From positions 10,060 through 74,059 of the forward strand of contig CDMY01000453.1 of the NCBI GenBank assembly GCA_001179505.1: 64,000 bases of DNA, written 5' to 3'. Both the position numbers and the translations under genes were made by a program. Numbering within the stretch: the stretch's first letter is position 1; each line of letters starts with the position of its first letter. This DNA is from Vitrella brassicaformis CCMP3155 (Eukaryota > Protista > Chromerida). The notes under the pieces are model-generated. The model was not told the DNA's origin. It did not search any database and saw only the letters and a program-made list of their open reading frames with translations. Shown here piece after piece: positions 8,634 through 28,679 of the stretch.

Positions 8634-10170
8634 TCAGATGTCGGTCTTCATGCGTCTCCGCTGCTCTATGTAGGTCAGATCGCTCTCGTCTTTTCTTTCC
8701 TCGGCCTCTTTCTTCTTCTGGGCTCTCGTGCGAGGTATCACCATCGGGGAGACTTCGGTGACATCGCTGTCGCTCTCATCTCCATGGTAGGAGCTCTCGA
8801 AAGGCAGTCTCTCTTGTGAAATGGCTGTGGATGAGGGGGGATGCATTGGCCGCGGCGCGTGCTCGCCCTCCTGCAAACAAGCGCGAGACACCAAGACGAG
8901 CGACGTGTGTCTGTCTCCCTCCATTCAGGCCTCTGACATTCGTAGCTATCAGGCCACTGACCAGCTTGTGTGATGATGTCTTTCGTTTGACTCTCTTGAT
9001 GTCGGGGTGCTGAAAGGCAAAAAGGCAGCAAGCAAAGAGACAGGCAGACAACGTACGTGGACAGGACTTCTTCAGGGAAGTGCGTTTGTGTATCCAATCC
9101 CATTCACCGTGAAGGCAATCAGTGCTGGGCAGGACATGAGGAGGAAGTCGCACACCCAGGTCCGCTTGGAGATCAGCAGCACAGCCGACACCCATATGGT
9201 GCGAATCACCGGGGCCGTGAACAGCCTGTAAGTAGGAGCCAAGCAGAAGAACAAACAGCATGGTACATCCATCTCGCTGCGTGTGCCGAAGGATGCCCAA
9301 CCGGTGCATGAGGGCGAGGCCGGCGGAGAGATACCACTTCGACACCAGCACATGGTCAAATTTCTGACATACAAAGTAGGAAAATGAGGTTATCGTCTTT
9401 GTTCTTGCCCACGGGCTCGGCTGACCAGTATGAAGACGAGCAAAAAGTAGATGCACCAGCTGTCCCACAGCGCCAAGAAAGTGTACCCGAGGATGTCCTT
9501 CAGGCGCCAATACAGCAACATCACTCGTTTCTCGGCAGCAGTGTGTGTCTCCTCCGCTATCCGCTTGGCGAAACAGAAGCGCAAGAAGAGCGGCACGGGC
9601 ACGGCCAGAAGCACCGACCACAATGACGCGAAAAATACTGCCAAGTCGAGACAGACAGAGACATACATGAATGACCGAATGACAGCAGTGTGTCGCACAT
9701 AGATTGCTGGGCTGTGCGTCTGTCTCACCGTGCCAGCTCGGTATAAAGGGGTTGCCCAGCGGGAAACACACGTCAGCTGTACGTACCGAGGCAAATTTCA
9801 TCTTAATTACAGTGTATATATGGTCTGTGCTCATTGGTGGGTCGACTACGTTACGTACGTGATGGCTGGAATGCGCATTGTGCGTTGAAGAAGAGAGACG
9901 AAATGAAGAGCTCCGTGAGGATACCCGACAACTCGACCGAATACCGCTGCGTCCTGCATTATTAACGAAAAGGCCTCTGATGATCTCGATGTGCCGTGCG
10001 TCTGTTCACTCACTCACCGTGAGATGATGGGGTCATACGGTAGGACCTTGGGCACTGAATTCATCCACAGACAGGTAGATGAGACACATTCATTCATGTA
10101 TGAGGCACGCGTGTAGCCAGCCGTACGTGGGTGTTCTCGGATGGCCACTGTTGTGACGAGCTTTCTCGGC
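8634..10170 (-). CDS. C-terminal multi-pass membrane region of the PKD1-like gene
   Basis: Spliced WGPRKLVTTVAIREHPLPKVLPYDPIISRTQRYSVELSGILTELFISSLFF resembles the polycystin-1-type 'H(P/W)...(F)TRxQR...L...' segment that precedes the TM bundle. It is followed by hydrophobic exons (VFFASLWSVLLAVPVPLFL, LGYTFLALWDSWCIYFLLVFIL, APVIRTIWVSAVLLI) and a charged tail ending RRRMKTDI*. Confidence 0.62.
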
Positions 10171-13100
10171 CCCCACTGAGACACCCATCCAAAGAAATCA
10201 GATGGACCGCCAACAAAGGAGAGTCAGTGCATGGCCTAATACCCAAGACCGTGATCTCATCTGACTGACATCGTGATATTGGAGACGCTGAACCACACAC
10301 ACACACACACACACATGTTGGTTCATACGTATGCGCCTTCAAGTGTGTGTCTGTCTGTATGTGGCTCTCCTCTCCCCCCTCTCCACTCACCTTGGCCAGG
10401 ATCAAGTTCTGACACGACGGCATGAAGGCGAATGTGAAATGTGAGTGTACGTCACTTGCCCGTGTCTCTGCTACATCTTTCCTCTCAGCCCACTCACTGC
10501 CCGCACCTTACCTGGTTCCTCTTGGTCTGCTGTGTGATGGCCGCCCTCAGGTTGACTGCCTCCCAGGTGTAGACGACGGTGTCGTTCTGGTACTGCTCAA
10601 ACCGCACGAGCTGGTCGTGCATATACTTGCAGCACCTGCCACAATCGCCGCACCGACCAGGCGCCACCTCGCTCTCCACCTTATCCGCCCCGTCCGCCGG
10701 CGCCTTGAGCCGCTCGCTCGCCAATGGGAGCGACAACTGCAGTGGTGGCTTCTCAGCCGCATGTTCCGTGTCGTGGTGTATCAAGGCCGGCGGCTGCGTG
10801 TCTGCCTTCTGCGTCCCCACGTCGGGCCGCAGCTCCACGGTCTGCGAGGGAGATTGGAATGATGATGAGATGACCAGGTCAACCTGCTGGTCGCCGGCGG
10901 CCTGGTTCGACGCCTCTGATGATTGTGGCGAGCCCGCTGGATTTCGCTTGCGCAAAGAGGGACTACCGTGGCCGCGGGTGGGGCGGAAGGTAGCCGCGGC
11001 GGGTGCAGCCAATGTGTTTTCGAAAAAACCGAAGGAAGCAATTGTCAGGCCTGTCTTGAAGACAGCTGGGTCATCCGTCTGCGTTGGTGTCTGCTGAGGT
11101 GATGCATCGTCGAAGAAAGACGCAATGACCTCTTCGCTGGGGATGTGAGAGTCCAAGGCGGCCGAGGTCTGCGTCTCGAGCCCGAACAGCCCCGCGACGT
11201 CGAGTGCGGACAGTCTTCGGTTCCCGGAGATGGCTTGATTGGGAGAAGTGTCTGGGTCTTTTGCGGAGAAGGTGACCGACCGCGCCATAGCTGCCTGCCT
11301 GACCGCGGCCTTCTTTTTCGTCTCAGATTGGTCGTCGAAGTCTGCGAAGATCGTGATGCGTCTCCTGTTGCCGGCGTGGGTCTTGCTGCGTGTCGCGGAC
11401 GACAGTCGGGAGACGGTCGCAGCGAAGGAGCTCGCGAATGCCGAGTTGGAGAAGAAGAGACGCACGGTGGTCTTGTTGGTCAGGGAGAGCTTCACCGATG
11501 GAAGATGCGAGACCTCCAGCCCCATCTGCCCTTCGGCTGCATCCGCCTCGTCTCCCTCCATCTCCTTGAGCGACTCGATGTGAGACATGAAGACGGCGTA
11601 TACCGTGTATACCACCTCGTTCTTCTTGAGGCCCTCGGCATCCTGCTGCTGCTCCTTCCCCTCTCTGTCGCCGCCGAAGGGAAGCCGGAAGAACGACCGG
11701 ACGGTCTGGGCCGTCTGCGTCGTGCCCTGGCTCATCCTGCCGATTGAGCCCCGTCTCTCCACAGAGTGTCTTCTGGCTGGATGGGCTGACCGCGGCAGTA
11801 TATTGAGAACGTTCCCATTGTGTGACAACCAGAGCGAGCACAGGCCGAGCTGCGGGCAGTAGGCGTCGAGCGCTGTGGATGGGATGAAGAGGGGTGAAGT
11901 GCCAATATCGTGGGCGATCTCATATGTCGTGGAGGCCCATGCAGCCTTTTCTTGTTCTGTCGACTGCACCGGCTTCCAACTGTAGCTCTTGTTGGCAAAG
12001 AGCGGCGGCTGCGTCAGGAACTGCAGGTTGTTGCCCGGTGAGGTCGTCTCCAACTCCATTGCAAAGCTCAAATCCTGTCCGGACGGTGACGTAGGAGCCT
12101 TGTGCCGACTGAGGATGCTCGATGCCTTCTCCTGGGCTGCGTCCTGGTCTGTGTCGCTGTCAACGATCTCGTTGGAACCTTTGCGGACGTAGAAGCGCAC
12201 CACGGTCTGCTCGGGGACGGAGTCGTCAATCTCGACAACCACTCGATCCACTGCCAGAATGTGTCTCGGGCCCTCAAAGTCGATCTGGTCCACACGGGGC
12301 ATGTGTGAAGCAAACATATTGATATCTGTGTGTCTGTTTGTTCAAGTGCACCATGGGTTGGAGAAGCCCCTCGGCAAATGCTGCCTCGGGATGAACGCAG
12401 ACCATCCTGCCCTTGTCCGTCAGCTGAATACCCACACGGGCCGACACGTAAACGATTCTTCTCATTACACGTAAACGTACCCACAGCAGGTGTCGGGTAT
12501 CTTCATACAGGTTCTCGGCGCTTCCACTAATGTGACCCACCTGCATCGATACATGGAGACATGCATTGAGACACAGCGTGAAAGATCATGCGACACTGGC
12601 TCACGTTGATGACGGCCTCAAAGGTGAAGTCGTGTGCCGGCAGAAAGAGAGCGTTCTTCTTCATTCGACGGATAAAGACGGGAATGGCTCCCAACGGGGG
12701 CAGATAGCGAGACTGCTTCTCGGCGGTCAACCCGCGCTTCACACCGGCCAACTCGGGGTGAGTTGAAGACAAACGGATCTCTGCGGCGCTGCGCACATTC
12801 ATTCATGTGACAAATTGAGCACTCCTGTTCTTCCCCTTCCAACATGTAATGTATGCGAGAAGCCTACCGCATTTTGCTGTATGCTGTGTTGTTCTCTTGC
12901 GCATCTAACAAGGCGGCGAACATTTGCTTCTGGCGCGTGAACTATGGCAAATTGTCACAAAGAAAAACACCAGGATATTATGAAGCTCTTCATCTCCTTT
13001 GTATGCGCAAACTTACATAGTCCTGTCTCCTTTTGTAGATTTGTGACATCTTCCTGAACGAGCGGCCACGACTCACTGCAAACAATCACGCATCGACAGA

Positions 13101-16100
13101 ACAGGAAAAAGCGTGTGAATCGGTGTGAGAAATGGGAACGAAACGTGTGTGCACCCACTTTCATCTCCCTGCAACAGCTTCTCTGCTTTTCTCTCGTTGC
13201 TGATGTTAGCAAAGCTCGCGACGGCGTGAGCGACTTGCATGGCAGTGCTGCGCAGCTCCACCTCCCTCTCAGGTGAGAGGCCAAAGACGAAGAAGAGAGG
13301 CCGAGCGGCTACAGGGATCGTGAAGTCCGACTGGCCGCCGTCCGTCATCGGCTTGTGCGATCGGTGAGGGTCCTTGCGTGAGGTGGCACAAGAGATGGTC
13401 GACGCCGCGGTTACAGTCTGGCGCATGTCCGACGTGGATGCCTCTGCATCGACACACACACGGGTTGAAGAGACGTCCCCATTTGTGTCATTCGTGTGTA
13501 TGGGCGTACGGTCGTCGTCAACCATGGCCGCTCCATGTTGGGCTTCCTCCTCCATCACTCTGTAGCGCCTGCCTCGGCGAGCCACACTTCGGAGCGTGAG
13601 CAGGGATGCGGCTAGCCGAGCCTGACGGTTGCGAGACGGAAATCGGATCACTTAGACACGAGACAGACGTGGTCATCCGAGCCGAGCTATGTACCTGTAC
13701 ATCTTTGTACTCTTTGTTCTGCACGTTGTACCAAAGCTGTTGATCTGACCCCGCCTTGTCAGCTTGGGTGTCCAGCATGTCCTTCATGGCTTTCTTCGCC
13801 TGCAAGGTGCTCTTCATGTGGGTCAGCGGCGAATGCTCGTCCTCGTCCTGATGACGGACAGACAGACAGACAGACAGGCAGGCAGACAGGCAGACACGCG
13901 CATGTCCCTTGATATACACGCTTCATCCCTTTTGCATACCAGGCCCTCATCGTCTTCCCCGTCAGCCCCCTGCTTATCCTTGCCGTAGAGAGTGGGCACT
14001 GTATGCTTCGTCACCTCTGAGAAGGGCCGCTCTCGGTAAAGGATTGACGTCAACCAGCCGAAGCAGCAGAAATAGCCTATCCATCGGCCGATCATCGTCA
14101 CGTTGATGACCACGGGAGCCACGAAAATCATCCCGCCAAAAAAACTGAATGAGACACGCACATAGCGCATTGCACTTGCACTGAATCGACCTGCCCTCCG
14201 GCTATCGGCTATCCGTCTGCATGCTTACCGAAAAGGTGGGCAGATCATACAGAGGAAATCCATGTCTTTGCGGGCGTAGCGGTCTTGGAAGAAGATATGT
14301 TGGCGTTTGCGGGGAGAACGCCAGTCGTGTCTAGGAGAAAACATCGGCAAGCAGCAGTGAAGGTCGAATCGCACGCAGTGCTCTGCTCCAAGTGTTGCGG
14401 CCACCTGTCTCGTGTTCTCAGATATATGCAGGGGGAAAAGAGCAAGCCAAGGACGAAAACAAGGCCGAGAAAGTGGTGCGGTCTCTCGGCGAGCCCCTGC
14501 AGCAGCGTGTCGCTTTCCCCGACGATGCCGATGTTCGAGCTCTCGAACTTTCTCGTGGACTGCTTGGCAGCAGCAACGAAGCTGGTGAGATGGTCGCAGC
14601 TGCATGTCACATGACTTCCGTTGCTCTCGAGCTCGGTGCAGCCCTCTCTCGACCAGTTGCCGCTCCGTTCGTCGAAGAACTGGCAGGTGCACTCTGTGAA
14701 GTTCTCCCAACTGAAGGTGGTCCCCGGTTGAAGTGCAGGCGGTCCCTCCAGGTTCACGCTCGGGTTGAAAGTGCTCACGCCTGGGAGCTGCACGTATGAG
14801 TGACAAGCAGAGGAAACTCGACTTTGCTTCCAATGGACGTATTTGTTTGTCAGGTGCTCACCTTGAACAGGCGTCTCCTCATCGTTGCCTCGTGGTCTAT
14901 GCTTTGCGGCAGCAGCGCCCACACGTCTAGACTAATCAGCGGCGAGAGGGTGGCGTCGAGGCCCATCACAGACACCTGATCGTAGCTGCGCTGCAACAAA
15001 CGCACCTCTGAGTCATCACTGGCTGACGTTGCATTCGTGATGTTCGGGCACGCCATGGTGAAGTTGACGAGACGCGGTGCATCCTCTGCCGTGTCATCGA
15101 GACGTCGGCCGGTATCTCGCCTCCCGATGTTGAGCGATCGGCCATTGCACTTGAGCTGAATCGTCCTCACGTGTCCGAGTGTTGCGTTGGCTGCGGGTGC
15201 AAAAGCGAATGGGTTGGCGTTCCAGTCCATCTGGCTGACAGATATCGGCCCGTCGAGAGCCGACTGCGGCGCTAGCTCATCGAACAGCAGCATGTCATCA
15301 CCCCCAGCGAACGCGAGGCTGCCCTGCATCAGACCACAGCACATGAAATCACTTGTGTGTGTGAATGGGTATGTGTCTCTCGCATTTGATTCATCACACG
15401 TACGGCTCCCGCGCTCATGCCCGTCTGGACGAACTCGTCTTTGTTCCGCTTCATGACAAGGACCTTCAGCCCGCCTCTCTCAACGCTTTGCTCCTCTCCC
15501 TCAACGGCTTCGTCAGAGATATCGGCTGCCAGGCTCTGACCCGCCTCGAGACACCTGCTGGATATCTCTTTGGACTGGCTGCTCAAATCGGCGGTGGCCT
15601 CTAGCCTCTCCGTCAGGGCTGACAGGCTCTGCAGACCGCAAGACAGCAAGAGACGCACATCATTAGTACATGCATGAAAGCGTGGAGCGCGTTCCTCATT
15701 TACGCTCGGTGCTCACTCACTCCAAGTACGGCCCCTCTTGCGGCTGTGGCGGCCTCGGTGTCATCACTTGCCGCACTGCACTTGCCTGTCTGAGCCCGGG
15801 TCTGGCCGGCCACCAGCTCGGCGCTGAACGAACGAATATGCTCAATTAGTATACGGAAATTTGTATGCGTGTTCGGTTACGGACCCTTTGTCGAGCATGT
15901 CATGGTCAAGGTGGCTAGAGAGGCCTGCTGAGAGTACCTCCTCTATCACCTGTGATACCACGCACACCTCATCCTCGCCTAGCCCCTGAGACGTCTGCAC
16001 TCACACACATGTTACATACGCATACAACAACATATGCACAGAGGCTGAAGGAATGTCGACGACGCACCTTGATTGCGTCAAACAAGCCACTGATGAGCTG

Positions 16101-19100
16101 CGTGCCACTGATGAGCTGCGTTTGAGTCTCCCCACGTGATCGCTGGGCCTGAAGAAGCATCACTATCGAATCGGCCACCTGACTGCACGAGCTGAGAATG
16201 CCCGATGCGTCAGCGTTCAGGAGAGCCTGCAAGTTGTAATCAAGCACAGCAGGCGCATGCGTGTGCCGAGACGCGGAATTGGCTGACGAGGTACTTACTG
16301 CAGAAAGAACGTTTGTGATGTCTCCAGCGGACACATCACCAGCCTTCACAGCTTCACTGGTTACTTCCACAGACGGACACGCTAGCGCGTCTTGCCGAGC
16401 AGCAACCATGTTCCCTTGCATCTGACACTGATAGCCGTGTGCGTCCCGCACTACACCATAGAGCGTCCAACGGCCCTTAGGCAGCGGTCGCTCACATATA
16501 AGCCCCCCTTCGCTCGCTTTTGAAAATGGGCACATTCTGATGGGGCTGCTGCTGGACTGATCGTCGCCGGCAGCCGCTCGATAAAAGGCAAATGCCTGAT
16601 AGAGAAGCGACGCAGGTGCAACAAATCGCGTATGTGTGTATGGTGGGAGACGTCTTGATGAGTTTATCTCTTTGTGTGTACCAGCTCATCAATGTCGTCA
16701 TCGTCCTTCCAGCCATACATCTCCAATCGGACAGTCTCGAATGTCGATACTGTGGTTTTGCTCGCGGTAATGTGGCCGCCAAAGGGGGGACGATCCATCA
16801 AGAAAGCATCTGAGACAATTGTCTGGTCAGCCGAGAGCTTCGCCGCAACGCGGTATGTTTGCCCAATGTCCAGCGCATCCATATCAAGAGCGACCCCAGA
16901 AATTATCTGGCCGATCTGAGCCGCTTCCATCCCCTGCTTCAATAGAACAATCCTGCTCTGAGCCTGCGTCAGGGCCTCTGACGGGTCCAGCAGCGTCTCG
17001 CTCGTAATGCTTCTCCCATCCGCTCTCTGGAGCCACCACTCCACTGTGTCCGTGGAAAGTGACTGGCACTGGATGCCTGCCGCCTCCGTCGATGGGGTGA
17101 AGAGTACCACGTTGACACGTTCTTGCCTTGAAGACACCCTGCAACCGACGAAAGAAAGATGACATGCCAGTGTGTGAAAAAGCCTCCGTCTGATCCTCAC
17201 TTCTTCGGAATGGGTGAAAGGGCGAGCGGAGGCTCGCCGGAGCTGGTGAAGGCCACCTTCGTCACTGCCGGCCCTTCGTCGCTGACCGTTGTGCCATCTT
17301 TCTCGATGTGAGCCGTCAGAGCAAAGAATACAACGCTGGCAGACAGACGAGTGCCCTCGACTGGTCTTTCCCCCTTGTGGCTGGTCGTAGTTGTCGTTTC
17401 TCCATCAAAGAAGGCTGCACCTGTGCACGACTCGACGAGAGAAGATGACGTAAGGAGATCCAGAGCATCTTTGGCTGATCGATCCGCTATCTGGCTGGCG
17501 AACGTCGTTGCGCGCAACTCCTGGGTGTTGTCGCTGATCTTGAAACACTGCCACTTGAGACCGAGAGCGGCAGCCGGAGGTGCAGCCACGTTGTAGGACA
17601 GCGAGAATGGGCAGCGGTCTCCAACGACTGTCGGCGCTGTGAGACTGACAACCGGTTGAGAGTAGCCACCGACGTCGACTCGAAACTCGACCGACACTCG
17701 GTGCTCAGGGGAGTCCTTGTACCAGGCTTGGGCGACGATTATCAGCGAAGAAAACGGCTGCAAGGTATCTGGCTGGAGCAAGATTTTCAGCTGGTGGCCA
17801 GATGTGTTGTTAGCAGATAGAGACACCAACGAGTCATCGCCCGCTTCGCTGGCCGCTTGCCTGTATAGCCACTCGACAACGACATCGCTCGCGCTTGAGA
17901 CCGATGTCGAGGGACATGATTGTTGGGCATCCTGGCTGGTGTCTGCCAAGACGACTCGAAGTGAAAGAGGCTCATCCACCTATCCAGAAAATACCATTCG
18001 GCGCGTGTGAGTGCGCGCTTTTCGTGCCTACGTGTTGGCTGGAGATAGCTGGGCTGCCCAACGAAGGAACAAGGCTTGGATAGCTGACGCTTTGCCTGAT
18101 GTCGACGTCGATGGAAATCTCTTCCCTCAGCCGTGACGAAAGAAAATTCGTCGCATTGATCTCAAACACAAAGCGCACGACGTCGGTGCTTTGCAGGCTG
18201 CTGTCTGCGTCGACCGCTGCACGGATCTGTTCAGGGGTAAGCACTAAACTAGTGCTGGCGAGACCTGCACAGTGCACACACATGTAAGGTCACAGGGGGC
18301 TGTACGGTTGTCTCCTGGTGGTAGGCGACATGCAAGGTGAATCTCCGGACTCACCTTCGGTGGATGAGATGTGATCATTGAGGTAGGAGCACGCGGCGAC
18401 CGGCTCGAGACACGTCCACGAAACGTCAAGAGGACGCCCACTGCCGCCACTCAAGTACACATCGACAGCGGCCACGCTGTCGCAAATGGAGTACACTGGT
18501 CGCTTCAAAACAGTAGCGAAGAGCACGGGAAGGATCACACCTGCCTGTACGCCGATCTGCTTTGACACGTCAGAGAGGAACCAGCCTGTGGGAAGGGGAG
18601 AGGCCTCACTCATCGCTGCCTCGGCTCGCGCAATCGTGGCGTCGTTAACGGTGATCAGCTGGCCAACTTTGGCAGTCGGGGAGTCACCGAAAAGGACTGC
18701 AATCATCCGGTCAGATACGGCGATGCACTGCGGGTCAGTGCCAAATGATGCCGAGCTCTCGGCAGTGAAGATGCCGCACAGATCTCCACCGCCACGAGTG
18801 ACGGGAGTGAGAGCATTGTCGCTGCCGAGAACCGCCAAAGGAACGTCGAACGACACGAGGAGAGCCGAGAAGCCCGTAATAAAGTCGATGGACAGCAGAG
18901 TCGGCAGGGGCAGCTCTTCGCATAAGAATGACTCAGTGGGCGATGCTTTGCAGCCAATGGTGGTGGTGGCACTTGTCTGCCCCGCCAGATCGCACTCCAT
19001 CTTATGGCAAAGGACAAGTTTGTCCGGCGGGGATGTCGAGGACATGTCGCAGATGTGCCAGCCCGCGAGGAGAGGTCCCGTCGCCATGTCACACGCGGAC

Positions 19101-22100
19101 AGACGGGTGCACGTTGATGGCTCTCCAATATTGGTCGTACACGTCCACCCTTCGTCGATCGCCAAACAGTCAGCTGCGCAGCCTGAACAACACAAAACGA
19201 GCAAGACAGACACAAAGTGTATGAATCCACCAACGTTCACTGGTACATACCATCGCCCGAGACAGAGTTGCCTGCGTTGTTGAAGCAAGTAAGCAATAGC
19301 ACAGCAGATACATTACAGGCGTACTGTGTGTGTGTGTGTGCGTGCGTGTGTGTGTGTGTGACCATCATCGCAGACTTCCGCTTCGGTCTTGAACGCGTCT
19401 CCACAAAGAGATTGCTGCACATGGGAATGGCGAAGAAAACAGTGAAGCATCTCTTCTTTCTGGCCTCCATCTGGCCAGCGTCCATGTCTCTTGCTTACAC
19501 ACGAGTGGAAGAAGTTGCCAGCGTCATCAGCAGTCGTAATGCACTCGTAGCCCTCCGGACACTGGTCAGGACAACCTGCAATGCCCATGTACATACAGTG
19601 CTCCCTCGACTACTGGCGTCGAATTTCACTCACCTTCGATGACAGTGAGGACTCGCCCATGTCCAGGTGCCGTGGTGTACTTGGCATGCAGAGCATCAGC
19701 ATCTTCCCCGCTGATATCACACGACTCATCCCTCTGCTGACTGGCGTCACAATAGCAGATAGCGAGCCGACCCTCATGTGTACCGACAGGCAGCGGAGGC
19801 GTCTTTGTTGTCCCGCAGGTGACTTGTGTCGCCTCTCCCGTGCACGCCAGCCTCTGGTCAACGGCCTTGTTGGCGATGGCGGCGTCAGCAACGGCGACGC
19901 AGAAGGCAGATTGGGATAAGGTGCTGTCGTCGTGGAGGCTCGGCGGCAGGTACGCGTAGAGGATCTGGTCGCTGGTCTCGTCCATGTTGGTGCCGGTGAG
20001 TTCCAGACTGAATGTCTGACCAACACTCAGTGTGAGGCCGGTCGATCCCGGGACGCGCAGAGAGTCAACGACGGCTGCCGCGTCTTTCGGACGATATTCG
20101 AGCTGCAGGGAGAACGCCTCGGCATTGCCGTTTCCCGCCTGGTCGTGCACCACTCCAGCAGGCACCTCCAGTGCGGATGTTCCTGCAATGCTCCTCCGGA
20201 CCAGCAAGAACCACTCGTTGGTAAACACCGACTCGGGCGGGACAGAGGCCAGACCAAGATTCGCAGCTTGCAGCGCAGCGTCGAGAACAGGGCTCTGGAT
20301 TGCGACGGGCTCCGTGGAAGTAAGCGACAGATTGAAGTATCCATCCGTTGACGAGGCGTCGGTGGTGCGGATGGATTGGCTGCTGTCGTCCAGGTGTAGA
20401 GACACGGACGGCGGCGTTAGATCGTTGGTGACGCTGACCGTGTTCGACTCTGTGTTGGTCCTCCCCGAGGACACACCCACTGCCGCCCCGTCAGGGATGA
20501 AGATCGATGCAGAAGAGTCCGCTTGGATGGATATGTGTATGTCAAACATCTTGTGGCCGCTGTCTTGGGCTTGGACGCTGTCCACCGTAGCATTCGTTGC
20601 CGTTACGTCTGATGCTGTGAATGTGCTCGGATCCATGGCCTCAGTAAATGTTGCCACAACAGTGACAGCCTGTTGGTTGGTGAGAGCAGGTCCCGTGAGA
20701 ACGAGGCTGACAGTCGGCCTCGGCAGCTCTTCGGCAAATGCGAGTTGGAAGGATGATCCTCTAAGAGCGTTGTCCGTGACAGACGAAACAGACACATTAA
20801 GAAGCCCCGCCTGACTTGATGCTGCGGAGATCGTCGCAACTCCCTTGAAGAGGGTGGTGGTCAACCCACAATCCCCGAACTCCACTCCACTCACAGAATT
20901 CGCGTCCAGGCTGCAGTCGATGCTCACATCGTCTGACCTCGAGCTGACGGTGTTGTTGAAGGCGTCTGTCAGGGTGAGAGTGAGTGCGACGGAGGTGCCG
21001 ACCAGAAAGGTAGTGTTGTCTTGCACGCTGATAGCGAGGCTGTCAGCGGCTCCGGGGACGACAGAGAAACTTAGAGTGCTCGAGACATCAAGTGCTTGAG
21101 AGGGGTTCGCCATGCTCACGCTGTACGACCCGACTTGCGTGAACACATAAGTGAAGGTGACAGTGTCTTGACTTGCGAAGGAGATGCTGTGCGGGCCAAT
21201 TGTCTCTTCTGTGGACACAATCGATAGTTGGATGCTCATGGTGGTTGAAGCCGGCTTTCCATAAGTGTCCCGCGACGACATGGTGATGGATGCCGTGTCT
21301 CCGGCAGGGACAGTAGCCGCCACGCCGCTGAGAATCACATCAATCGGCACGCCTTTTCCTGGCAAGTCGATGCCTATGATAAGCGCCGCCTGATTGATCC
21401 ACGTGACTGTCTTGCCAGTAAGAGCATAGTTGGTGTCCCTCATATCCATCGTCCCAACTCGCAGCTCAAGGCTTGTGCCTGTGCTCTGCACCGAGATGCT
21501 GGCCACGCCGTGCACGATCGCGATGTCGGCGGTTCCGGCTGCTATGTTCTGGGATATCACTGCAGTTGACGGCTCGATCAAAAGGGCGGCAGAGACCCGA
21601 TTCTCGTCATCCCGCAGATAGACGCTGATCGTGCCCATGGCCTCGGGAAGCACATTGCCATGGGCGTCCTCTGCTCGTATAATGACCGAGATCGACTGAT
21701 TCGCAGCCGCATTTGCCGGGCCAGTGACTGCGACTTGCTGCGGTGAAGCTATCGATTCGGATACAAAAGGAGACGGCGGAAGAAGAGAAGAATGAGGCAA
21801 CTCGTCTTTCGCCTTTGGCAACCATGGCTGCCTACTTGGCAGGACGCAGAACGATCTTCCTAGCATATAGCGGTTCGTGCGGGTCGAGTTGTACGTCACC
21901 GTTTGTGTCCCGCCTTCACACACATTGACTCGCACTCACAGGTGAGACAGAGTGGGTCTGTGTGTCCGCGCGCACCTTGTATCTGCTCCATGACATCATA
22001 TGCTTGCCCTGTCCCATCAACAGGGTTGATCGTCACAGCCCCGCTTGTGGCTGCATTCACCGTCAATGGACAAAATCCTGCAAAGATAGATCTCAGGAAA

Positions 22101-25100
22101 CCAAGAGCCAGCAAATGCCCAATGCACAGACACACTGTCGCTTCTCGCTGCCAACGAACCGTTCGTCATTTTGCAGAAGTTCAATATGGGCTGCACATAC
22201 CACTCCATGTTCCAGGGGTCAAATACAGCGTTGGTTCCTTGCAAGATTGCGAGTATATTGGTCTCAACAGTGGGGTCGTCGACGGGCCCCCCGCTAGTAT
22301 AGCTGGCGGCCTGCAGGTTCACAGTGAAGGGCTGCCCAGCCGTGGCGTAGTCATCGCCCCCGGGCCACACCGTATACACCACTTTGTCTGCCGCGAAAGA
22401 GACATTTCCAGAATGTGTGTGCGTACAGGCAGGTGTGAAAACTCACACATGCATCCACTCACTGGTAACAAGCAGCGTCTTGCTCGTCTCGATATACTGC
22501 CCAGATGCCACTTCGTGTTTCACACGTATGTTGACCTGTCGAGCCGGCAGATCGCAATTGACTTCGTCGAAACTGACCTCGAAGACACCAATGCCTCGTT
22601 CGATGCGCACATCGCTTCCGCCGTCGGGAGTCCGGTACAGCAGACAGTTCAGCCCGGCGGCAATGTTGACGGTAGCCGAGCAAATGGTGCATCCGTCGAG
22701 GCCTGTCTCCACGATGTTGCCATTAGGGGTGTCCAGAAGGCCAACGTATACTGGGACATAGGCGTCAGCAGCAACGATGTTGTTGCTGAACTCTATTGCG
22801 ATTTCTGTCGGCTTGTCGTTCACTGAGGGACACCGCAAAAAGGAAACATTGAAGCACTTTCATGTAGGTGTGATGTGCTCGCGTGTGTCTTGACTTACAA
22901 GGCAGCCAGCTGACAGTTTGTATTGAGTCGCCTTTGAGATGCGCCGGCCCAGCGACGCGTGCCATGGTCTCCCTCGGTGACTTTGTCTCTGTCAGCTTGA
23001 TGCTTGCCAGACCTCTTGTCAGCTGAACAGTCTCAGTGGCCACTAGGGTGTGCCCAGGGAAGCTGCTCAGGCTAGTTGTCGGATCGGCAGCTGATATGTG
23101 TGACAGTAGAGACATAAATGTACAGTTGCATGGTGTCCATTCTTGCAGCCTACGGCTTTGCACGACAAGCCAGTGGATGTCCTCGGGATGCTGCCAATTA
23201 TTGAAGCACGTGTGTGAGGTGTCGTCTTTCCCCTCCATCTCACTGTCACTGGAGCCCTGCACATATGTAAGCACTCACAGATGAATGCCTGGCACCTTGA
23301 TGGAGACAAACCTACCTCCAGTGTGAGCGAAACGGATGTCGCGTTCCGATACGACACGTACTGCATTGTCAAGGCACGCATCGAGATTGTGTGTTGTGTT
23401 CTTTTCTGTGGGTACGTGCTCATACCTGTGCAAAACGGAAGAGCTGACCGCTGGGAAAGGGCTGGCTGAATTCAATCGTCCAGCGCGGATCGGTGGAAGA
23501 TCGCGAAAGAACGCCTACGTCCAGGTCTCTCACGGCGAGGCTGCAGAACATCACAGGTGCATCCATCCATGCAGCAATCTCTTTTTGTACTTAGGCCCGC
23601 GATGCTCTATGGCCAGATAGCCCACGGTGATGTCACTGTTCGACAGCGAAAGCAACACACCATCATCTGTGAGACCGACACAAAAAGGCCATGGAAGGAA
23701 GACAGCGACAGGCTGCTTGCTTGATTGTCTGTCTGTCCGTCGGGCTTGTCTGTCTGTTTGTTTGCCCTTACTCTCGTCCTGAAGGCCCAGCAAAAACCCA
23801 AGAGGTGTGACGTCACGGACGCGGACAGTCAGAAATCTCTGCTGATCAGTGTACGGCTGGACGGTCGCGATGACCACCACCTGGGTGCATGTGCACAGAT
23901 ACAAAATCGGCAGGTCGACAAAGATAGGGCGTGCCGTTCGTGTAGTGGCCCCGCACCTTGCTCGCTGCTCGAAAGGGCTGCTGGAAAATGACGCGTCTCC
24001 AGCCATCAGATGCGTACGTGATGGCCTCTGGCGTGGCGGTCCCGACAACGAAGTCGGCGGGAAATACGACAGACCCCACTTCTATGAGGTCGAGGCCCCT
24101 CTGTGGGTTTGGTTTCTGGTAGAGGCCTCTCTCAACTATGGCCCAGTCGAAGCTGGTTGTCAGTGATGAGTCGACTGTTGCGCACGCAGGCTGCTCCGCA
24201 GTGACGAAGAACGACCTGACGGCGCGTGCAATACGACAGATGACTTTCATGCTGGTGTCTCATGGGCTGCTTCCATGCATACCATCCAGTCTGCGTGCTC
24301 AGGGTCTTCCTTGCGTTTGTCGGCCCTCTGATTCGTGTGACTCGCGGCCTGGCCGAGGCCATGTTGCTGGTTGCAGAGGCCGGCATGTGGACGCCGAGCA
24401 GCACAATTGGCTGGGCGAATCCCTGTGTGACAGTGACCTGTGTCTCGTCGGTTGAGGTCACGCCAGTCATATGTCCCATCTCCGCATAGACAATCTTCGC
24501 TGCATTCAGTGAGACATAAAAAAAGAGAGGAAGAGAAAAAAGCTCAGCCTATACGTTTCTGCTTGTCGCTCACATGGACCATCCGTCCGGGTATAATACA
24601 TCGGTGAACCCCCTGGATTTGGGACCCAAAGGCATTCATGCCTGTAAACCTGCATGAGGGTCGTCGTGCAATGACCATCAATCAATTGACACCCACCCAC
24701 CTTCAGGTGTGCAGCGGAGGCCTCGAAATCCATGCGCAAGTATGCGTCCTGTGCGCCACACGGGCAGCAAGCACATGCAAGCCTTATACTTTGTATGTCT
24801 CACTCACCACAACGCCTCTCGGTATGACGGTGTACTGGTGTGTTGGGGGGCCTGAGGTGCTGTACCCGTAGACGAAGGTGTTTGTCGAGCTACTGTACGT
24901 CAGACGTATTGTTTCCTGGGGGTTTGTGGGGGAGGCGTACGTTCCCGTGACGTCCCACACTGACAGAGGGAGGAGTGACAGACAACAGTAAATGTCGGAA
25001 ATGTCTGTAGGCATTCTTCTTTTGGCTTCTCCGCTCGCGGCGTCCTTACAGGGATCGAGCGAGTAGCATTCTTGTAGGTCATAGTCGTAGCAGCACCCGA

Positions 25101-27699
25101 GAGCTTCACAGTTTGCTGGCGCAAGCGGAATATTTGGCACCATTGCACAGCGGGCAAAGGCCATGCTCTTGTTCGGACACGTCACATATTCTGAGGGAGA
25201 GAGGAAGAGAGAGAGAGACATGTGACATCGACCTTTGAAGCTGTACTCCTCACGTGTGTGGACGCCAAAGTACGGCCCGGTCTCGACGTCAATCATCGGA
25301 ACACTGTCACCCTCAGATGCGACTGAACAGAGAGAATGGCCAAACACGCTTTCACTTTAATGAGAACAAGCATGCGCTGTGCGGTCCCGTGTTGTGCTGT
25401 CGCGACCTTGTCCAAAGGTTGGACAGTTGTTATCTGCTTGAGCTGTCACATAGACATACTGCGGCGCAGTGACACGCGCCGCCTGATCCTCTGCATTGAC
25501 CATGGCCACTTTGACAGCTGGTCTGACTGCAGACAGAGGAAGATGGCTGGAGAAAGATAGACGCAGTCAGCTTCATGCGTACACGGCTCTTGCTTGACAA
25601 AAGCGTCGAAGCCGCTTGCGGGCACCAAGCTGGTGCTATTTGTCGCCTCACATCTGCTCGAGCCGCCGCTACCGCTGAACACCGCACAAAAGCACGCCGA
25701 GGACTCTGAACAGCTGCGAAGAAGCGACATACGTACACGTTAAGACAGACAGCCGTTGCAGCGGGAAGACGACATGGGTGCTGTTTGCGTACCTGTTGTA
25801 ACAAACTTTTTTCGTTACACCAGACCCCAGCACACTGCGGTCGCCCCCCGTGCAGTCATAGTCAGTGTGGGTCAGGTAAGGCACTGCATGACGCCGACAA
25901 GAGTGACCGACATGCCGTGCAGCTGCTTGTGGTTCATGTCTCTGTGACTTACCATGGGGCGCGCCCAGAATCCTCAGCCCGTACACACGCACGGGCACTT
26001 CCCCGTGGGTCTGCAGCAGCTTTATCTCCAACTCGTCCGTGTGGACGTAGGGAAAACGCACGTGGAGCCATGTCTGCAGACAAGCAGCAAGAAACTAGGT
26101 ACAAGAGACATGGCCCGGCCCTCGGTGTACCTGGTCATTGTCGGTAACCTCCGCGGCTTGCATCATTCCCGCGCCACTGTCCCCGTACCACACCTCGACC
26201 GTCTTCGGAGTGTGTGGCTGGGCGACCAGCCGCGGGATGATCTTGCGCTTCTCGTATTTGTCAAACGAGATTTCTACGCCTCCAATGTACGCAGCAGAAG
26301 TAAAATTGATAAGGAAGACGTCGGACGAGCCGTCCACCGACGAGCCTTCCCAGTAGGTGTCGGAGGCATCTGTAAGCATCTGTTCCATCGCCGAGCCGCC
26401 GCTGAAGGAATGCGCCGGGATGTGTGTGTACTCGGGCGCATTGGTCGCTTCGATGGCAAGATCGTCAAGTGGCCGCCACCCAAAAGGGTCCGTTGCATAT
26501 TGTATCTGATGCAGCGTGACGGCGACTGAAGTGAAAAGGCGGGAAACACACACACACACACAAAAAAGGAAGCAGTCAGTGGTGTTTCCATTCGCAAGAA
26601 CGAATACGTCTGCATTTGCCGGTCACACATCCAGCAGTGGTGCCGTGCTCGGTGGCCATCGTGATGTCGCCCGAGGAAGGCTGCTTCAGCAGATGGCAGT
26701 GTCCGGTGTCCTGTTGATAGTTGATGTACTTGCAGTCGTTGCGGCTGTAGCAGAGGGCGAGACAGGCACGCGCACTGGACGGGGAGAATATCATGTTTTC
26801 TCCCCCAAACCCCTGCCAGGCATAGTCGGCGCCTTGATACGCATAGTCAGCAGACATGGCTGCCGGGAGATAGCAGTAGGGAAGGCAAGAAGCGTCCGTG
26901 GCGTCAGCCTCGATCGCTGCAACACACGCGTTGGCCCACTACTCTTGTCAGATGGTTTCGAATAGTCGATTTAATCACCTGAACAATCGCCTCTGCCATT
27001 GATGGCACCGGGCTCATCTTTGAACGAATCAATATCGCCAGGATAGCTGCAAATACAGAACAGGAATTGTGTGGCGCGAGTATCCGCTGTTGAAGCGTGA
27101 GTACAGACGGATGCATACATTTCAAAGTGACCGCATTGCGCGTGGCCCATGTGCGTGGACACAGTAAAGTGCGTGCAGGAGGGTTCCGCCAGGCACTCTT
27201 GCTGGCAGCGGACGACGGCGGTTTCCTTGGTTGTGGTATCTTTCCAGCCCCCTGATGTTGAGAGTCTGCGGGGGTGCGAACTGTCAGTCGAATACGTGTA
27301 GGCCACATCAAACTGATAGCAGCCTGTCGATGAATGCATCCAACATGCAACACAGCCATCTTCAAGCGTCGGTGTTCCCTTTGACGCCTTCTCACTGGCT
27401 TTGCAGAAGGGCGTCTCCTCGCAAGAGATTCCGTCATAAGATCCGAAATCACAGTACCGACAACATAAGTGCCCCTGCACACCGCAGCCAGTCGTCGTTG
27501 CCTCGCACGTGGGGTCAAACTTGACGCGTTCGCCGCTCGACAGAGAAAGACCGGCACACGTTGATCTGGTCACGCTGATGTCATTGAGGCATTCGTCAAT
27601 CAGGCAGCAGGAGGGCTGGAAGCAGATGGCAAGCAGCAAAGAGATGGCAACGGGAGCCAGAAGGCCTGAATGCCGTCCTCCTGGATCAGGAACTGCCAT
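8634..27699 (-). CDS. Giant polycystin-1/REJ-family adhesion receptor-like protein (signal peptide, PAN, F5/8C-like, trefoil, Ig-like, Cys repeat, REJ, GAIN/GPS, multi-TM); many exons
   Basis: All recognisable coding segments from ATG 27699 (signal peptide LLAPVAISLLLAICFQPSCC) to the stop at 8634 are on the minus strand, bounded by GT-AG introns, in the canonical PKD1-like domain order. Joins that I traced (e.g. TM1-RDR/HDWRSP..PFR/FFGGMIF; IREHPL/PKVLPYDPIISR/TQRYSVEL) keep frame. Not every junction was verified. Confidence 0.72.
14575..14692 (-). other. GPS (GPCR proteolysis site) motif of a GAIN domain
   Basis: CTCQFFDERSGNWSREGCTELESNGSHVTCSCDHL/TSFVAA matches C-x-[FW]-..W..GC..C-x-C-x-H-L-T-x-F. 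A hydrophobic TM helix (HFLGLVFVLGLLFSPCIYL) follows ~35 aa later. Confidence 0.93.
15969..18283 (-). other. REJ (receptor for egg jelly)-like Ig/FnIII region
   Basis: Exons with LKWQCFKI, FFALTAHI, VEWLYRQ, LKILLQPDTLQPFSSLIIVAQA, DRPPFGGHITASKTTVSTFETVRLEMYGWKDDDD and LPKGRWTLYGVVRDAHG. The PP.GG....W.D and LP.G...L.V.V.D..G motifs are typical of REJ modules upstream of GAIN. Confidence 0.75.
19130..19420 (-). other. Myxococcus-type cysteine-rich repeat (DUF4215-like), split by two introns
   Basis: Spliced CGDAFKTEAEVCDDG/NSVSGDGCT/(T)DCLAIDEGWTC matches CGDG..E.CDDGN...GDGC...C.IE.GW.C. Confidence 0.8.
19950..21750 (-). other. Long intron-free exon encoding several bacterial-type Ig-like beta-sandwich domains
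   Basis: PTVSLVLTGPALTNQQAVTVVATFTEAMDPSTFTASDVTATNATVDSV...NTESNTVSVTNDLTPPSVSL and SLELSTEPV..VPAGVVHDQAGNGN resemble bacterial Ig-like repeats (D.T.P.V, TF.E.V..F...D, D.AGN). The sequence is Ser/Thr/Val/Ala-rich. Confidence 0.7.
25060..25190 (-). other. Trefoil (P-type)-like domain
   Basis: CPNKSMAFARCAMVPNIPLAPANCEALGCCYDYDLQECY has the six-Cys spacing C..R.C....C...GCC[FY]D...C[FY] of trefoil domains. Confidence 0.7.
25960..26500 (-). other. F5/8 type C / galactose-binding-like domain
   Basis: MEQMLTDASDTYWEG..VFLINFTSAAYIGGVEI..TPKTVEVWYG, then TDELEIKLLQ..VRVYG in the next exon; pattern typical of discoidin/galactose-binding jelly-rolls. Confidence 0.6.
26600..27330 (-). other. Two PAN/apple domains at the N-terminus of the giant receptor (a third PAN-like unit at ~25600-25900)
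   Basis: CYQFDVAY...CQQECLAEPSCTHFTV...C and DYAYQGAD...ACLALCYSRNDCKYINYQQDTGHCHLLK. The third unit is DYDCTGGDRSV..CYNRCSESSACFCAVF..RC. Confidence 0.75.
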
Positions 27700-27863
27700 A
27701 ATGGAATTTAATGCGAATGCTGGACGAATGGAAGGCGAGCTAGATGTGGGGCCCTCGTGGGGCCCAGCGCCTACCCGTCGCCCCCCTACCCGTGCCGTCT
27801 CGTCTCCACTCTCATACCGCGTAAAGGTGTCCGTGCACGTGGCGTGCGGGGGGGGGGGGGGGG

Positions 27864-28163
27864 NNNNNNNNNNNNNNNNNNNNNNNNNNNNNNNNNNNNN
27901 NNNNNNNNNNNNNNNNNNNNNNNNNNNNNNNNNNNNNNNNNNNNNNNNNNNNNNNNNNNNNNNNNNNNNNNNNNNNNNNNNNNNNNNNNNNNNNNNNNNN
28001 NNNNNNNNNNNNNNNNNNNNNNNNNNNNNNNNNNNNNNNNNNNNNNNNNNNNNNNNNNNNNNNNNNNNNNNNNNNNNNNNNNNNNNNNNNNNNNNNNNNN
28101 NNNNNNNNNNNNNNNNNNNNNNNNNNNNNNNNNNNNNNNNNNNNNNNNNNNNNNNNNNNNNNN
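27864..28163. other. Assembly gap (300 N) flanked by poly-G runs
   Basis: N run read directly, with G homopolymers on both sides. Confidence 0.99.
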
Positions 28164-28679
28164 GGGGGGGGGGGGGGGGGGGGGGGGGCGGGGTGGGTGG
28201 ATGGGTGTCCCGAAAAACCGAAAACTATACACGAAATGCGCTTGCCTTGCCAAGCGCCGAAGCGAGCCGGAGACGGTGCATATATGTTGATCGGGTCGCT
28301 CTCGCACGCGTACGCTACCATGGCATGGGTAGATGAAAATTACTTGACGAAAAGAGGTGACGTCAGCGATGTGTCGACATACATGTACACAATACACACA
28401 CAGACATGCACAGGGAGAGAAAGAGAGAGAGAGAGAGACATAGAGTTAGGAGGAGTGCGCGCATATACGCAACACAGAGTAGCAGAGTTACGTCCAAACT
28501 AGTCGGGCTGCCTGTCTCTCCCCGGTGTCTGTCGGGCAGCTGCTCAAAACGCGTCCGTCCACTACGTACATACACATCTGCATTCACACCCACACAAGCT
28601 GGCACACTCATTCGCCCACTTTGCCGCCTAGGTACAAAACCCTTCTATGCAAGACGCACACAGAAATGCAAAACAGACT

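Follow-up and report, generated by a model that had tools for sequence, protein, structure and literature searches.

A giant gene of the chromerid alga Vitrella brassicaformis probably encodes a polycystin-1-like GAIN receptor devoid of PLAT and channel-like domains

Members of the polycystin-1 family (human PKD1, PKD1L1-3 and PKDREJ, and sea-urchin suREJ) have a large modular ectodomain followed by a GAIN domain whose GPS motif, carrying the HL/T site, lies directly before the first transmembrane helix (TM1), and a large cytoplasmic insert separates TM1 from TM2. In Ectocarpus, the male-gamete-specific protein Esi0130_0068 (1,427 aa) combines REJ and GPS with multiple TM helices, and it has been proposed to be a gamete-recognition receptor under positive selection (PMC4700764). 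The GAIN fold and its autoproteolysis motif are shared by adhesion GPCRs (latrophilin, BAI, GPR126 and others). Alveolates also have GAIN proteins: according to the passages of Arac et al. (2012, PMC3321182) considered here, Tetrahymena has more than eight GAIN domains, and those passages deal with GAIN only, mentioning neither the membrane module nor a likeness to polycystin-1 TM1-TM5.

We analysed a stretch of 64,000 nucleotides from Vitrella brassicaformis (hereafter the window; contig CDMY01000453.1), in which the whole 8634-27699 interval is most likely a single expressed nuclear gene of this chromerid alga. Its product is probably a 4,756-aa multi-pass, polycystin-1-like GAIN receptor that lacks both the channel and PLAT, and not an 11-TM polycystin. 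Compared with polycystin-1, PLAT is absent and an unrecognised TM1-TM2 loop of ~950 aa is present instead; the TM6-TM11 channel-like domain (PKD_channel), the coiled-coil tail and the PKD repeats are missing, and REJ, a polycystin-1-like trait that does occur in relatives of the window protein, was undetected. The ectodomain also differs from that of polycystin-1, being built of PAN, lectin-like and bacterial-type Ig modules. Judging from its described architecture, Esi0130_0068 resembles the window protein in belonging to a SAR protist and in having a large extracellular N-terminus and few TM helices after the GPS, but it is far smaller, has a clear REJ and contains no PAN or Ig array. The ciliate proteins are, like this one, alveolate GAIN/GPS proteins, whereas adhesion GPCRs differ in their membrane part, since that of the window protein is not a 7TM class-B2 domain.

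The gene model was assembled from RNA joints, a spliced alignment to P0001 (CEL92750.1, a 3,799-aa Vitrella paralogue) and an ab initio chain. It runs on the minus strand, as do all features described below, from an ATG at 27699 to a TGA at 8634-8636, and comprises 64 exons and 4,756 codons plus the TGA. The CDS of 14,268 nt is a multiple of three without in-frame stops, and all 63 introns are GT-AG (50-152 nt, median 74). An earlier note, made from the sequence letters alone, had read about 30 ORF fragments in this interval as one giant gene in coherent order, with in-frame splice joins and a product of 4,500-5,000 aa; the single gene, most of the order, the in-frame joins and the size were borne out, the number of exons being 64. 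An 8,165-nt spliced RNA contig from run X6 has 15 listed CT..AC joints between 25407 and 22076, and the exons that it joins form a 693-aa open frame, the other two frames containing 23 and 26 stops. P0001 is collinear with 24094->8685 (28-81% identity), and the spliced alignment to it gave 49 exons with zero stops and recovered nine of nine RNA-proven introns in the overlap. The ab initio chain (27699->25407) shares three exon boundaries with the ends of RNA pieces (26916, 26525 and 26131). About 40 of the 63 introns are based on homology-guided or ab initio modelling, and several micro-exons (18-27 nt) should be taken as provisional. RNA read mapping covered 21900-27860; downstream of this region, continuity is suggested by the size of the RNA contig, the paralogue and the k-mer shares (sampled words present in run X6, 0.59 and 0.56; 31-mers wholly within model exons, 0.584 and 0.557). 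Upstream, the assembly has a gap of 300 N (27864-28163), 165 nt away from the ATG. Because no stop interrupts the frame between this gap and 27699, the start was chosen from two clues: the X6 contig ends at 27713, 14 nt before the ATG, and the N-terminus resembles a signal peptide. The last exon (8634..8870), which encodes the cytoplasmic tail and the stop, was placed by the spliced alignment to the end of P0001 and by the end of the ORF.

The ectodomain (~3,350 aa) comprises a signal-peptide-like start, PAN/apple modules, an Ig-like array and weaker lectin-type modules. Its hydrophobic N-terminus (aa 1-34, 27598..27699) reaches its highest hydropathy, 2.03, at aa 16-34. Two PAN domains had been proposed earlier; the second, in exon 4 (26608..26916), was recognised by PAN_1 (E 1.7e-6, 28.2 bits, cut-off 21.4), and its exon ends match the RNA piece 26610-26916, while the first, in exon 2 (27119..27323), stayed below threshold (PAN_2 E 0.0014, 19.1 bits, cut-off 21.1; PAN_1 E 0.008). 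The intron 27324-27395 fits both the consensus GTGAG...CAG and the end of an RNA piece. The F5/8C-like and trefoil modules of the earlier note stand as leads. For the discoidin-like module in exons 5-6 (25953..26525; exon 26131-26525 is identical to an RNA piece), the Pfam search gave no match, and a language-model lead comes from ESM-Atlas, where every one of the closest clusters is F5/8 type C (score 0.94); the trefoil (P-type)-like Cys module (25050..25190), with RNA-supported introns on both sides, is below its cut-off (E 0.0024, 18.2 bits, cut-off 21). A weak H-type-lectin-like beta module (23591..24130) is indicated by a full-profile H_lectin match (E 0.014) in the homologous residues 34-102 of P0001, which is collinear with the gene there, and a beta-rich region extends from it to about 21836. 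The proposed Ig-like array was recovered in a 2.1-kb exon (19634..21748; Ig_GEX2_N 7.1e-8, Filamin 9.3e-5, Big_12 4.7e-4). A Cys-rich repeat (19363..19575) shows a weak likeness to DUF4215 (E 5.5e-4; 4.8e-5 in P0001 and 2.8e-7 in P0003).

The autoproteolysis module predicted by the earlier note was clearly present. A GAIN domain (14578..15994) is supported by the GPS match (E 1.1e-10), by the alignment of the GAIN body and by a model of the relative P0005. The GPS motif (14578-14685), directly before TM1, retains the canonical His-Leu/Thr site (14584-14592), and cleavage is predicted between codons 14587-14589 and 14584-14586. Without the GPS motif, the GAIN body still aligns to other family members (97% probability, E 8.5e-11), and the P0005 model matches solved GAIN domains, adhesion-GPCR crystal structures, with Z 17-19.6. 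The REJ assigned to this protein was not recovered: the ~1,060-aa region where relatives have REJ (15404..19182) corresponds to it in position only, Pfam REJ had no match in the window protein even at E<=10, and hhalign of this region against REJ-bearing relatives gave a probability of 11.6%. REJ was detected in the relatives P0007, P0012, P0047 and P0094.

TM1 (14419..14475; hydropathy 2.05) is conserved in the family and, in the P0005 model, lines up with TM1 of polycystin-1. It is followed by a conserved Cys/Pro-rich hydrophobic motif (14000..14330; hydropathy 1.6-1.8), flanked by basic residues on both sides and modelled in P0005 as low-confidence beta hairpins, which we consider a hairpin or membrane-associated element and not a clean membrane pass. 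The region from TM1 to the motif is conserved across the family with E values of 1e-9 to 1e-61. The very large loop expected after TM1 was also found. It spans ~950 aa up to the C-terminal bundle (10018..13847), sits where polycystin-1 has PLAT, is 41% identical to P0001 and yielded no Pfam domain, only faint PH-type leads. Its Cys content (0.85% vs 2.74% in the ectodomain) and the basic residues on the loop side of the helices suggest that it is probably cytoplasmic. The C-terminal bundle is a four-helix TM module with a short closing helix (8962..9953), the equivalent of polycystin-1 TM2-TM5; phmmer matched it to P0001 (3e-126), P0003 (3.6e-50) and a dinoflagellate protein (5e-30), the weakest family match being about 7e-25.

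The GAIN domain is predicted to cleave itself, leaving a large adhesive N-terminal fragment non-covalently attached to a 5-TM C-terminal fragment. The GAIN/stalk would transmit ligand binding or mechanical pull on the ectodomain to the loop and the 5-TM bundle. PLAT and the six-helix channel-like domain are absent, so the protein would not act as a pore subunit in the manner of polycystin-1, and any ion channel or other effector would need to be provided by a partner protein. The flagellar or zoospore sensor of the earlier note is a speculative role for such a receptor. Alternatively, the protein could serve adhesion or surface structure alone, its GAIN/5-TM part anchoring it in the membrane and transmitting no signal. 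A lectin/Ig ectodomain of this enormous size would suit such a role, and neither the loop nor the tail showed a recognisable effector domain. However, conservation from chromerids to ciliates extends over the 5-TM module, the post-TM1 motif and some of the loop, more than an anchor would need, and we regard this alternative as unlikely.

The gene belongs to a large, expanded and uncharacterised alveolate family with members in chromerids, dinoflagellates and ciliates. The combination, for which the earlier note named no characterised counterpart, is not unique: the gene has paralogues within the same genome, and the GPS plus 5-TM core also occurs in dinoflagellates and ciliates. P0001 and P0003 (CEM12961.1, 3,344 aa), both uncharacterised Vitrella proteins, share with the window the order H-lectin-like/Ig array, DUF4215, GPS, TM1, loop and four-helix module, P0003 differing in its N-terminal region. 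The P0001 model begins inside a conserved exon, and a gene of its own (802 aa) has been annotated for the PAN-bearing part, so that the public annotation of the paralogue locus L001 (802 aa + 3,799 aa) would favour two genes in the window as well: a secreted PAN/lectin protein (27699 to ~24300) and a GPS receptor (~24250 to 8634), for which an in-frame ATG exists near 24250. This possibility seems quite improbable. In the corresponding interval (23957..24499, with exons 24283-24499 and 23957-24215), a single spliced RNA contig crosses via introns 24500-24573 and 24216-24282 with the frame open, and thus the window gene, unlike the P0001 annotation, includes the PAN-bearing part. At L001 itself, conserved coding sequence runs past the annotated gene boundary, the 214 nt annotated as intergenic being in frame with the P0001 ATG.

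The channel-less polycystin-1-like reading was also compared with known folds. An AF2 model of the P0001 four-helix module (which shares 56-81% identity with that of the window) had a pLDDT of 79, and its top PDB matches were all polycystin-1 residues 3245-3620 (Z 7.5-8.4; Foldseek E only 0.1). The model of the distant relative P0005, which includes TM1, matched 13 polycystin-1 entries (residues 3063-3623) with Z 9.8-12.2, the next unrelated row having Z 7.2. For helical bundles, Z values of 8-12 lie in a range where common arrangements can occur, according to the tool warning, and the two models were built from alignments of just 8 and 11 sequences. Searching the PDB with a sequence profile of the module gave no match; the AFDB neighbours beyond the family itself were PKD1L2, PLAT-domain and PKD/REJ proteins (probability 1.0). 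In the P0001 and P0005 models, TM1 and the four-helix module thus appear to superpose on polycystin-1 TM1-TM5, in agreement with the polycystin-like similarity expected earlier for the TM region. The PKD-like bundle of the earlier note holds in this fold, but not as a channel-type TM6-TM11 bundle. A full polycystin-1/PKDREJ-type protein, with REJ, GPS, PLAT and 11 TM helices, the last six channel-like, would account for the GPS immediately before TM1, the fold match and the REJ in relatives, including the Blepharisma protein P0047 (CAG9312590.1, 'GAIN-B domain-containing protein'), which carries the C-terminal module as well. It is nevertheless highly improbable: even with lenient cut-offs, no match to Pfam PKD_channel, PLAT or REJ came up in the window, in P0001 or in P0003; there are just TM1 and four helices, the structural match ending at polycystin-1 residue ~3620, before TM6; and the stop comes ~95 aa past the four-helix bundle (~70 aa past the short closing helix), all family members likewise ending after this module. 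Least credible is an adhesion GPCR, a GAIN domain with a G-protein-coupled seven-helix class-B2 receptor, of which GAIN/GPS is the hallmark and to which some Foldseek and VIA rows point, given that five helices and not seven are present, split by the loop, that 7tm_2 had no match, and that GPCR matches cover 3-4 helices with Z <= 7, below every polycystin-1 row, reaching in the 5-TM model Z <= 5.2 vs 12.2 for polycystin-1.

Between 27699 and 8634 on the minus strand, in DNA with a GC content of ~57% and short GT-AG introns, we observed stop-to-stop ORF pieces that are coding-like and lie in consecutive order. When the piece carrying the GPS motif was searched against 1.8 billion representative proteins, it returned P0001, a Vitrella protein of 3,799 aa. 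Among proteins of 2,090-6,648 aa, no full-length model of the window protein was found in the collections searched; the closest proteins are CEL92750.1 (P0001) and CEM12961.1 (P0003, 3,344 aa), both from Vitrella CCMP3155. Over window positions 24094 to 8685, P0001 aligns collinearly with 28-81% identity. It is a paralogue, encoded on another contig, and we used it as the query of our own protein-to-genome spliced aligner on the target 24300-8400. This alignment yielded 49 stop-free exons and recovered all nine of the RNA-proven introns in the overlap. For the region 27699-25407 we built an exon chain ab initio, with codon usage and splice matrices learned from the P0001-aligned exons and introns and a bonus for paralogue similarity; the boundaries of its exons match the RNA piece ends 26916, 26525 and 26131. 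The in-frame intron 27324-27395, absent from this chain, was added from an RNA piece end and the consensus GTGAG...CAG. The joined model comprises 64 exons with a coding sequence of 14,268 nt (4,756 aa) from the ATG at 27699 to the TGA at 8634-8636, with 0 in-frame stops, and its 63 introns measure 50-152 nt (median 74). Several micro-exons of 18-27 nt in this model, among them 19251-19271, 14862-14888, 10391-10408 and 10270-10287, are provisional.

The public annotation of the paralogue locus (CDMY01000104.1, 5742-25959) places an 802-aa gene with a faint PAN match 214 nt upstream of P0001, and this two-gene annotation raises the question of whether one gene encodes both the PAN and the GPS parts. 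The 802-aa gene is collinear with the window from 27621 to 24384, and the annotated 214-nt intergenic gap contains coding sequence that is conserved with the window exon 23957-24215 and shares the frame of the P0001 ATG. The public model of this locus probably divides a single gene into two by mistake.

Transcript evidence was obtained from X6, an RNA-derived sequencing run whose contigs we mapped on the stretch 21900-27860, chosen since the junction at ~24.2 kb is the least certain part of the model. A contig of 8,165 nt shows 15 listed CT..AC joints (equivalent to GT..AG) from 25407 to 22076, and it spans the boundary between the PAN and GPS parts through the introns 24500-24573 and 24216-24282. 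The exons joined by the RNA form a stop-free frame of 693 aa, and the other two frames contain 23 and 26 stops. This contig extends 5.8 kb past the mapped stretch; from its length only, and following the gene model, it would end at ~15030, just before the GPS exon. As an independent check on the gene model, we compared the X6 share of sampled 31-letter words (0.59 for 8700-14700 and 0.56 for 21900-27860) with the fraction of 31-mers lying wholly within modeled exons (0.584 and 0.557, respectively). The agreement fits an RNA assembly that contains essentially all modeled exons and no introns, with the 3' part included. One giant gene encoding 4,500-5,000 aa, as the earlier note had proposed, is borne out by the 64-exon model and by the RNA contig across the junction.

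A second X6 contig has its end at 27713 and so reaches 14 nt beyond the ATG on the upstream side. An assembly gap of 300 N (27864-28163) is located a further way upstream, 165 nt from the ATG. Because no in-frame stop separates the gap from the ATG, the start at 27699 depends on the end of this contig together with the signal-peptide-like character of the N-terminus; an extra exon could formally lie beyond the gap. In the introns and flanks, short CA/TG and CT-type microsatellites were observed (19240-19330, 13860-13900, 28380-28640 and others), whose ORF translations are His-Thr or Cys-Val runs, and the translation just beyond the gap is proline-rich.

Pfam was applied to all 30 large ORF pieces and then to in-frame exons at E<=10; for domains interrupted by introns, single exons or the paralogue served as the query. 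On the minus strand, exon 4 (26608-26916, within the piece 26579-26938) matched PAN_1 (PF00024) with 28.2 bits, the gathering cut-off being 21.4. Below threshold, a PAN module was detected in exon 2 (27119-27323, minus strand; PAN_2, 19.1 bits) and a trefoil in the minus-strand exon 25050-25190 (18.2 bits). The exon 26131-26525, on the same strand, has no Pfam match; its nearest ESM-Atlas clusters that bear a Pfam domain are all of the F5/8 type C (score 0.94), which is a lead, not proof, for a discoidin-like module. A weak H-type lectin match covering the whole profile was found in the region of P0001 homologous to window residues ~850-945. This part is followed by a beta-rich region, an Ig-like array (Ig_GEX2_N, Filamin and Big_12 in the 769-aa piece 19629-21935, minus strand), a DUF4215-type Cys repeat (weak Pfam match at 19316-19609, minus strand) and a domain-less region of ~1,060 aa. 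The mosaic ectodomain predicted earlier is present, with the PAN_1 match and the Ig-like array as its firmest elements and weaker matches for the other modules.

No Pfam match to REJ, PLAT, PKD_channel, 7tm or F5_F8_type_C was obtained in the window ORF pieces or in-frame exons at E<=10, and REJ (PF02010) likewise gave no match in the window exons, P0001 and P0003 even at this threshold. Pfam REJ is present in the relatives P0007, P0047, P0094 and P0012, at the position of the ~1,060-aa region of the window protein; an hhalign comparison of the pre-GPS region with the REJ region of relatives gave a probability of only 11.6%.

The GPS motif was recognized by Pfam (1.1e-10) in the piece 14248-14931, with its cysteines, tryptophans and HL/T triad intact (C..W..GC..C.C.HL/T). 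The ~300 aa that precede it in the window protein, P0001 and P0003, with the motif itself excluded, aligned with other family members with 97% probability (E 8.5e-11). In the AF2 model of the distant relative P0005 (residues 97-1296), pLDDT is ~70-92 over most of the GAIN part, and comparison of this model with solved GAIN domains (Gpr126, BAI3, latrophilin and others) gave a Foldseek E of 1e-7 and VIA Z values of 17-19.6. From the intact motif and the modeled fold, it is a well-founded inference that the GAIN domain of the window protein would self-cleave. Residues 15-281 of the P0005 model (GAIN region) also matched the axonemal doublet-microtubule chains 9fqr_Hn, 8glv_AE, 8j07_k3 and 9y6s_9K (Z 11-12, Foldseek probability 0.96-1.0), which hints at ciliary proteins with a GAIN-like fold.

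The first helix past the GPS, TM1 (14419-14475, minus strand), starts ~35 aa after the motif. It is followed by a conserved hydrophobic Cys/Pro-rich motif flanked by basic residues, a loop of ~950 aa, four helices within ~180 aa and a tail of ~70 aa; the stop codon lies ~95 aa past the four-helix module. The Cys content of the loop is 0.85% vs 2.74% for the ectodomain. The GPS, TM1 and very large loop described in the earlier note were all recovered. PLAT was not matched in the window pieces, in P0001 (whole and loop pieces, E<=10) or in other family members. The best-conserved part of the loop (window ~12352-12788, P0001 ~2840-2940) contains a GRAM/PH-like stretch, 'LLW-LTDKGR-L'; an ESM-Atlas search with the loop gave only faint leads of PH type (0.70-0.75). 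This stretch may be a lipid-binding module in place of PLAT.

The order GPS, TM1, Cys/Pro motif and four-helix C-terminal module characterizes an unnamed alveolate family of GAIN + 5-TM receptors, of which we compared P0001, P0003, P0005, P0007, P0012, P0015, P0044 and P0047, and the window protein follows it. Its region from TM1 to the motif matched family members with E values from 1.6e-61 to 1.6e-9, and its C-terminal module matched relatives with values of 3e-126 (P0001), 1.6e-21 (P0015) and down to 4e-6. Within this module, R, P, W, W and D are invariant. Conservation of the module (~200 aa) and of the TM1 region extends to P0001, P0003, P0044 (dinoflagellate), P0047 (Blepharisma) and several transcriptome or metagenome proteins, and PLAT and PKD_channel are absent from all these relatives.

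We compared the folds of the membrane part using models of the paralogue P0001 and the relative P0005. A homologue search with the C-terminal region of P0001, and then with an 8-sequence profile, returned only P0001 and one weak match of 370 aa, so the alignments for structure prediction were shallow. The AF2 model of the P0001 four-helix module reached a pLDDT of 79, and its best solved matches were all polycystin-1 chains (Foldseek probability 0.93, E 0.1). The top six rows aligned it with polycystin-1 residues 3245-3620, which we take to be TM2-TM5 (UniProt topology), with VIA Z values of 7.5-8.4. Among Swiss-Prot models, the best TM-score corresponded to residues 1694-2016 of mouse PKD1L1, and the neighbours in the AFDB fold clusters, beyond alveolate GPS proteins, were animal PKD1L2, PLAT-domain and PKD/REJ proteins (probability 1.0, E 8e-4 to 2.5e-2). 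The P0005 model, which includes TM1, matched polycystin-1 residues 3063-3623 in 13 entries with Z values of 9.8-12.2, although for helical bundles a Z below ~13 can reflect a common arrangement; the next unrelated row had a Z of 7.2 and GPCRs did not exceed 5.2. The structural match stops at residue ~3620 of polycystin-1, before TM6. A shape search of the ESM-Atlas with the module was uninformative (TM <=0.33).

An adhesion GPCR of class B2 is very unlikely, since there is no 7tm_2 match, five helices and a ~950-aa loop past TM1 are present, and the structural matches to GPCRs are partial and lower-ranked. Homology of the membrane part to TM1-TM5 of polycystin-1 is, on these models, likely, because the hits are consistent, a gap separates them from unrelated rows, the order GAIN-TM1-insert-four helices is shared and the neighbours include PLAT-bearing proteins. 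It is not proven, given that a sequence profile of the module matched nothing among all PDB chains at E<=10. With the polycystin-1 family the window protein has in common a GPS-bearing GAIN domain directly before the first TM helix and, according to the P0001 and P0005 models, the N-terminal TM1-TM5 fold. In contrast, polycystin-1 has PLAT in the loop after TM1, and the last six of its eleven TM helices are TRPP/PKD_channel-like, whereas the window protein has TM1 plus four helices, no PLAT match, no match to PKD_channel (PF08016) and no channel half. Of the REJ, GPS and multi-TM PKD-like architecture claimed earlier, the GPS, TM1 and a polycystin-1-like TM1-TM5 stood, and the full architecture with its channel did not.

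On the basis of its sequence and these models, the window protein is probably a PLAT-less, channel-less GAIN receptor of polycystin-1-like type, with an adhesive ectodomain of mosaic composition, and its membrane part corresponds to the front half of that of polycystin-1. In the likeliest mechanism, autoproteolysis of the GAIN domain would generate an adhesive N-terminal fragment held non-covalently; binding to this fragment, or a pull on it, could be relayed to the cytoplasmic loop and the bundle of five TM helices, and a channel, if any, would have to be a separate protein. A broader proposal, which we advance only tentatively and consider rather unlikely, is that the window gene and its relatives encode the front half of polycystin-1 as a protein in its own right (GAIN and TM1-TM5, without PLAT and the TRPP-like half), forming a family widespread and expanded in alveolates, with a PH/GRAM-like lipid-binding module possibly replacing PLAT in the lineage-specific loop.

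In humans, polycystin-1 is of major importance in disease, and debate continues over the roles of its TM1-TM5 region and of GAIN cleavage. The existence of a large protist family with exactly GAIN and TM1-TM5, minus PLAT and the channel half, suggests that these elements can function as a self-contained module. The family also supplies outgroups for tracing the assembly of 11-TM polycystins. If these are true homologues of TM1-TM5, the animal 11-TM polycystin-1 may have arisen when a receptor of the GAIN-5TM kind fused with a TRPP channel, and the family would be a simple setting for studying the function of the enigmatic TM1-TM5 domain in isolation. With regard to chromerid and apicomplexan biology, the gene joins apicomplexan-style PAN adhesive modules to a predicted self-cleaving receptor, which makes its product a candidate for cell-cell, cell-substrate or gamete/zoospore recognition.

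Our literature search turned up no publication on chromerid polycystin-like proteins. GAIN domains of a ciliate were reported in 2012 (PMC3321182), and in the brown alga Ectocarpus a multi-TM protein with REJ and GPS has been described as specific to male gametes (PMC4700764). The relatives carry automatic database names such as 'GAIN-B domain-containing protein'. A relative from the representative protein search, P0140 (1,019 aa), shows an unusual combination: a weak GPS match and a C-terminal module in two parts, separated by a Tetraspanin-family match (697-874) and an IQ motif.
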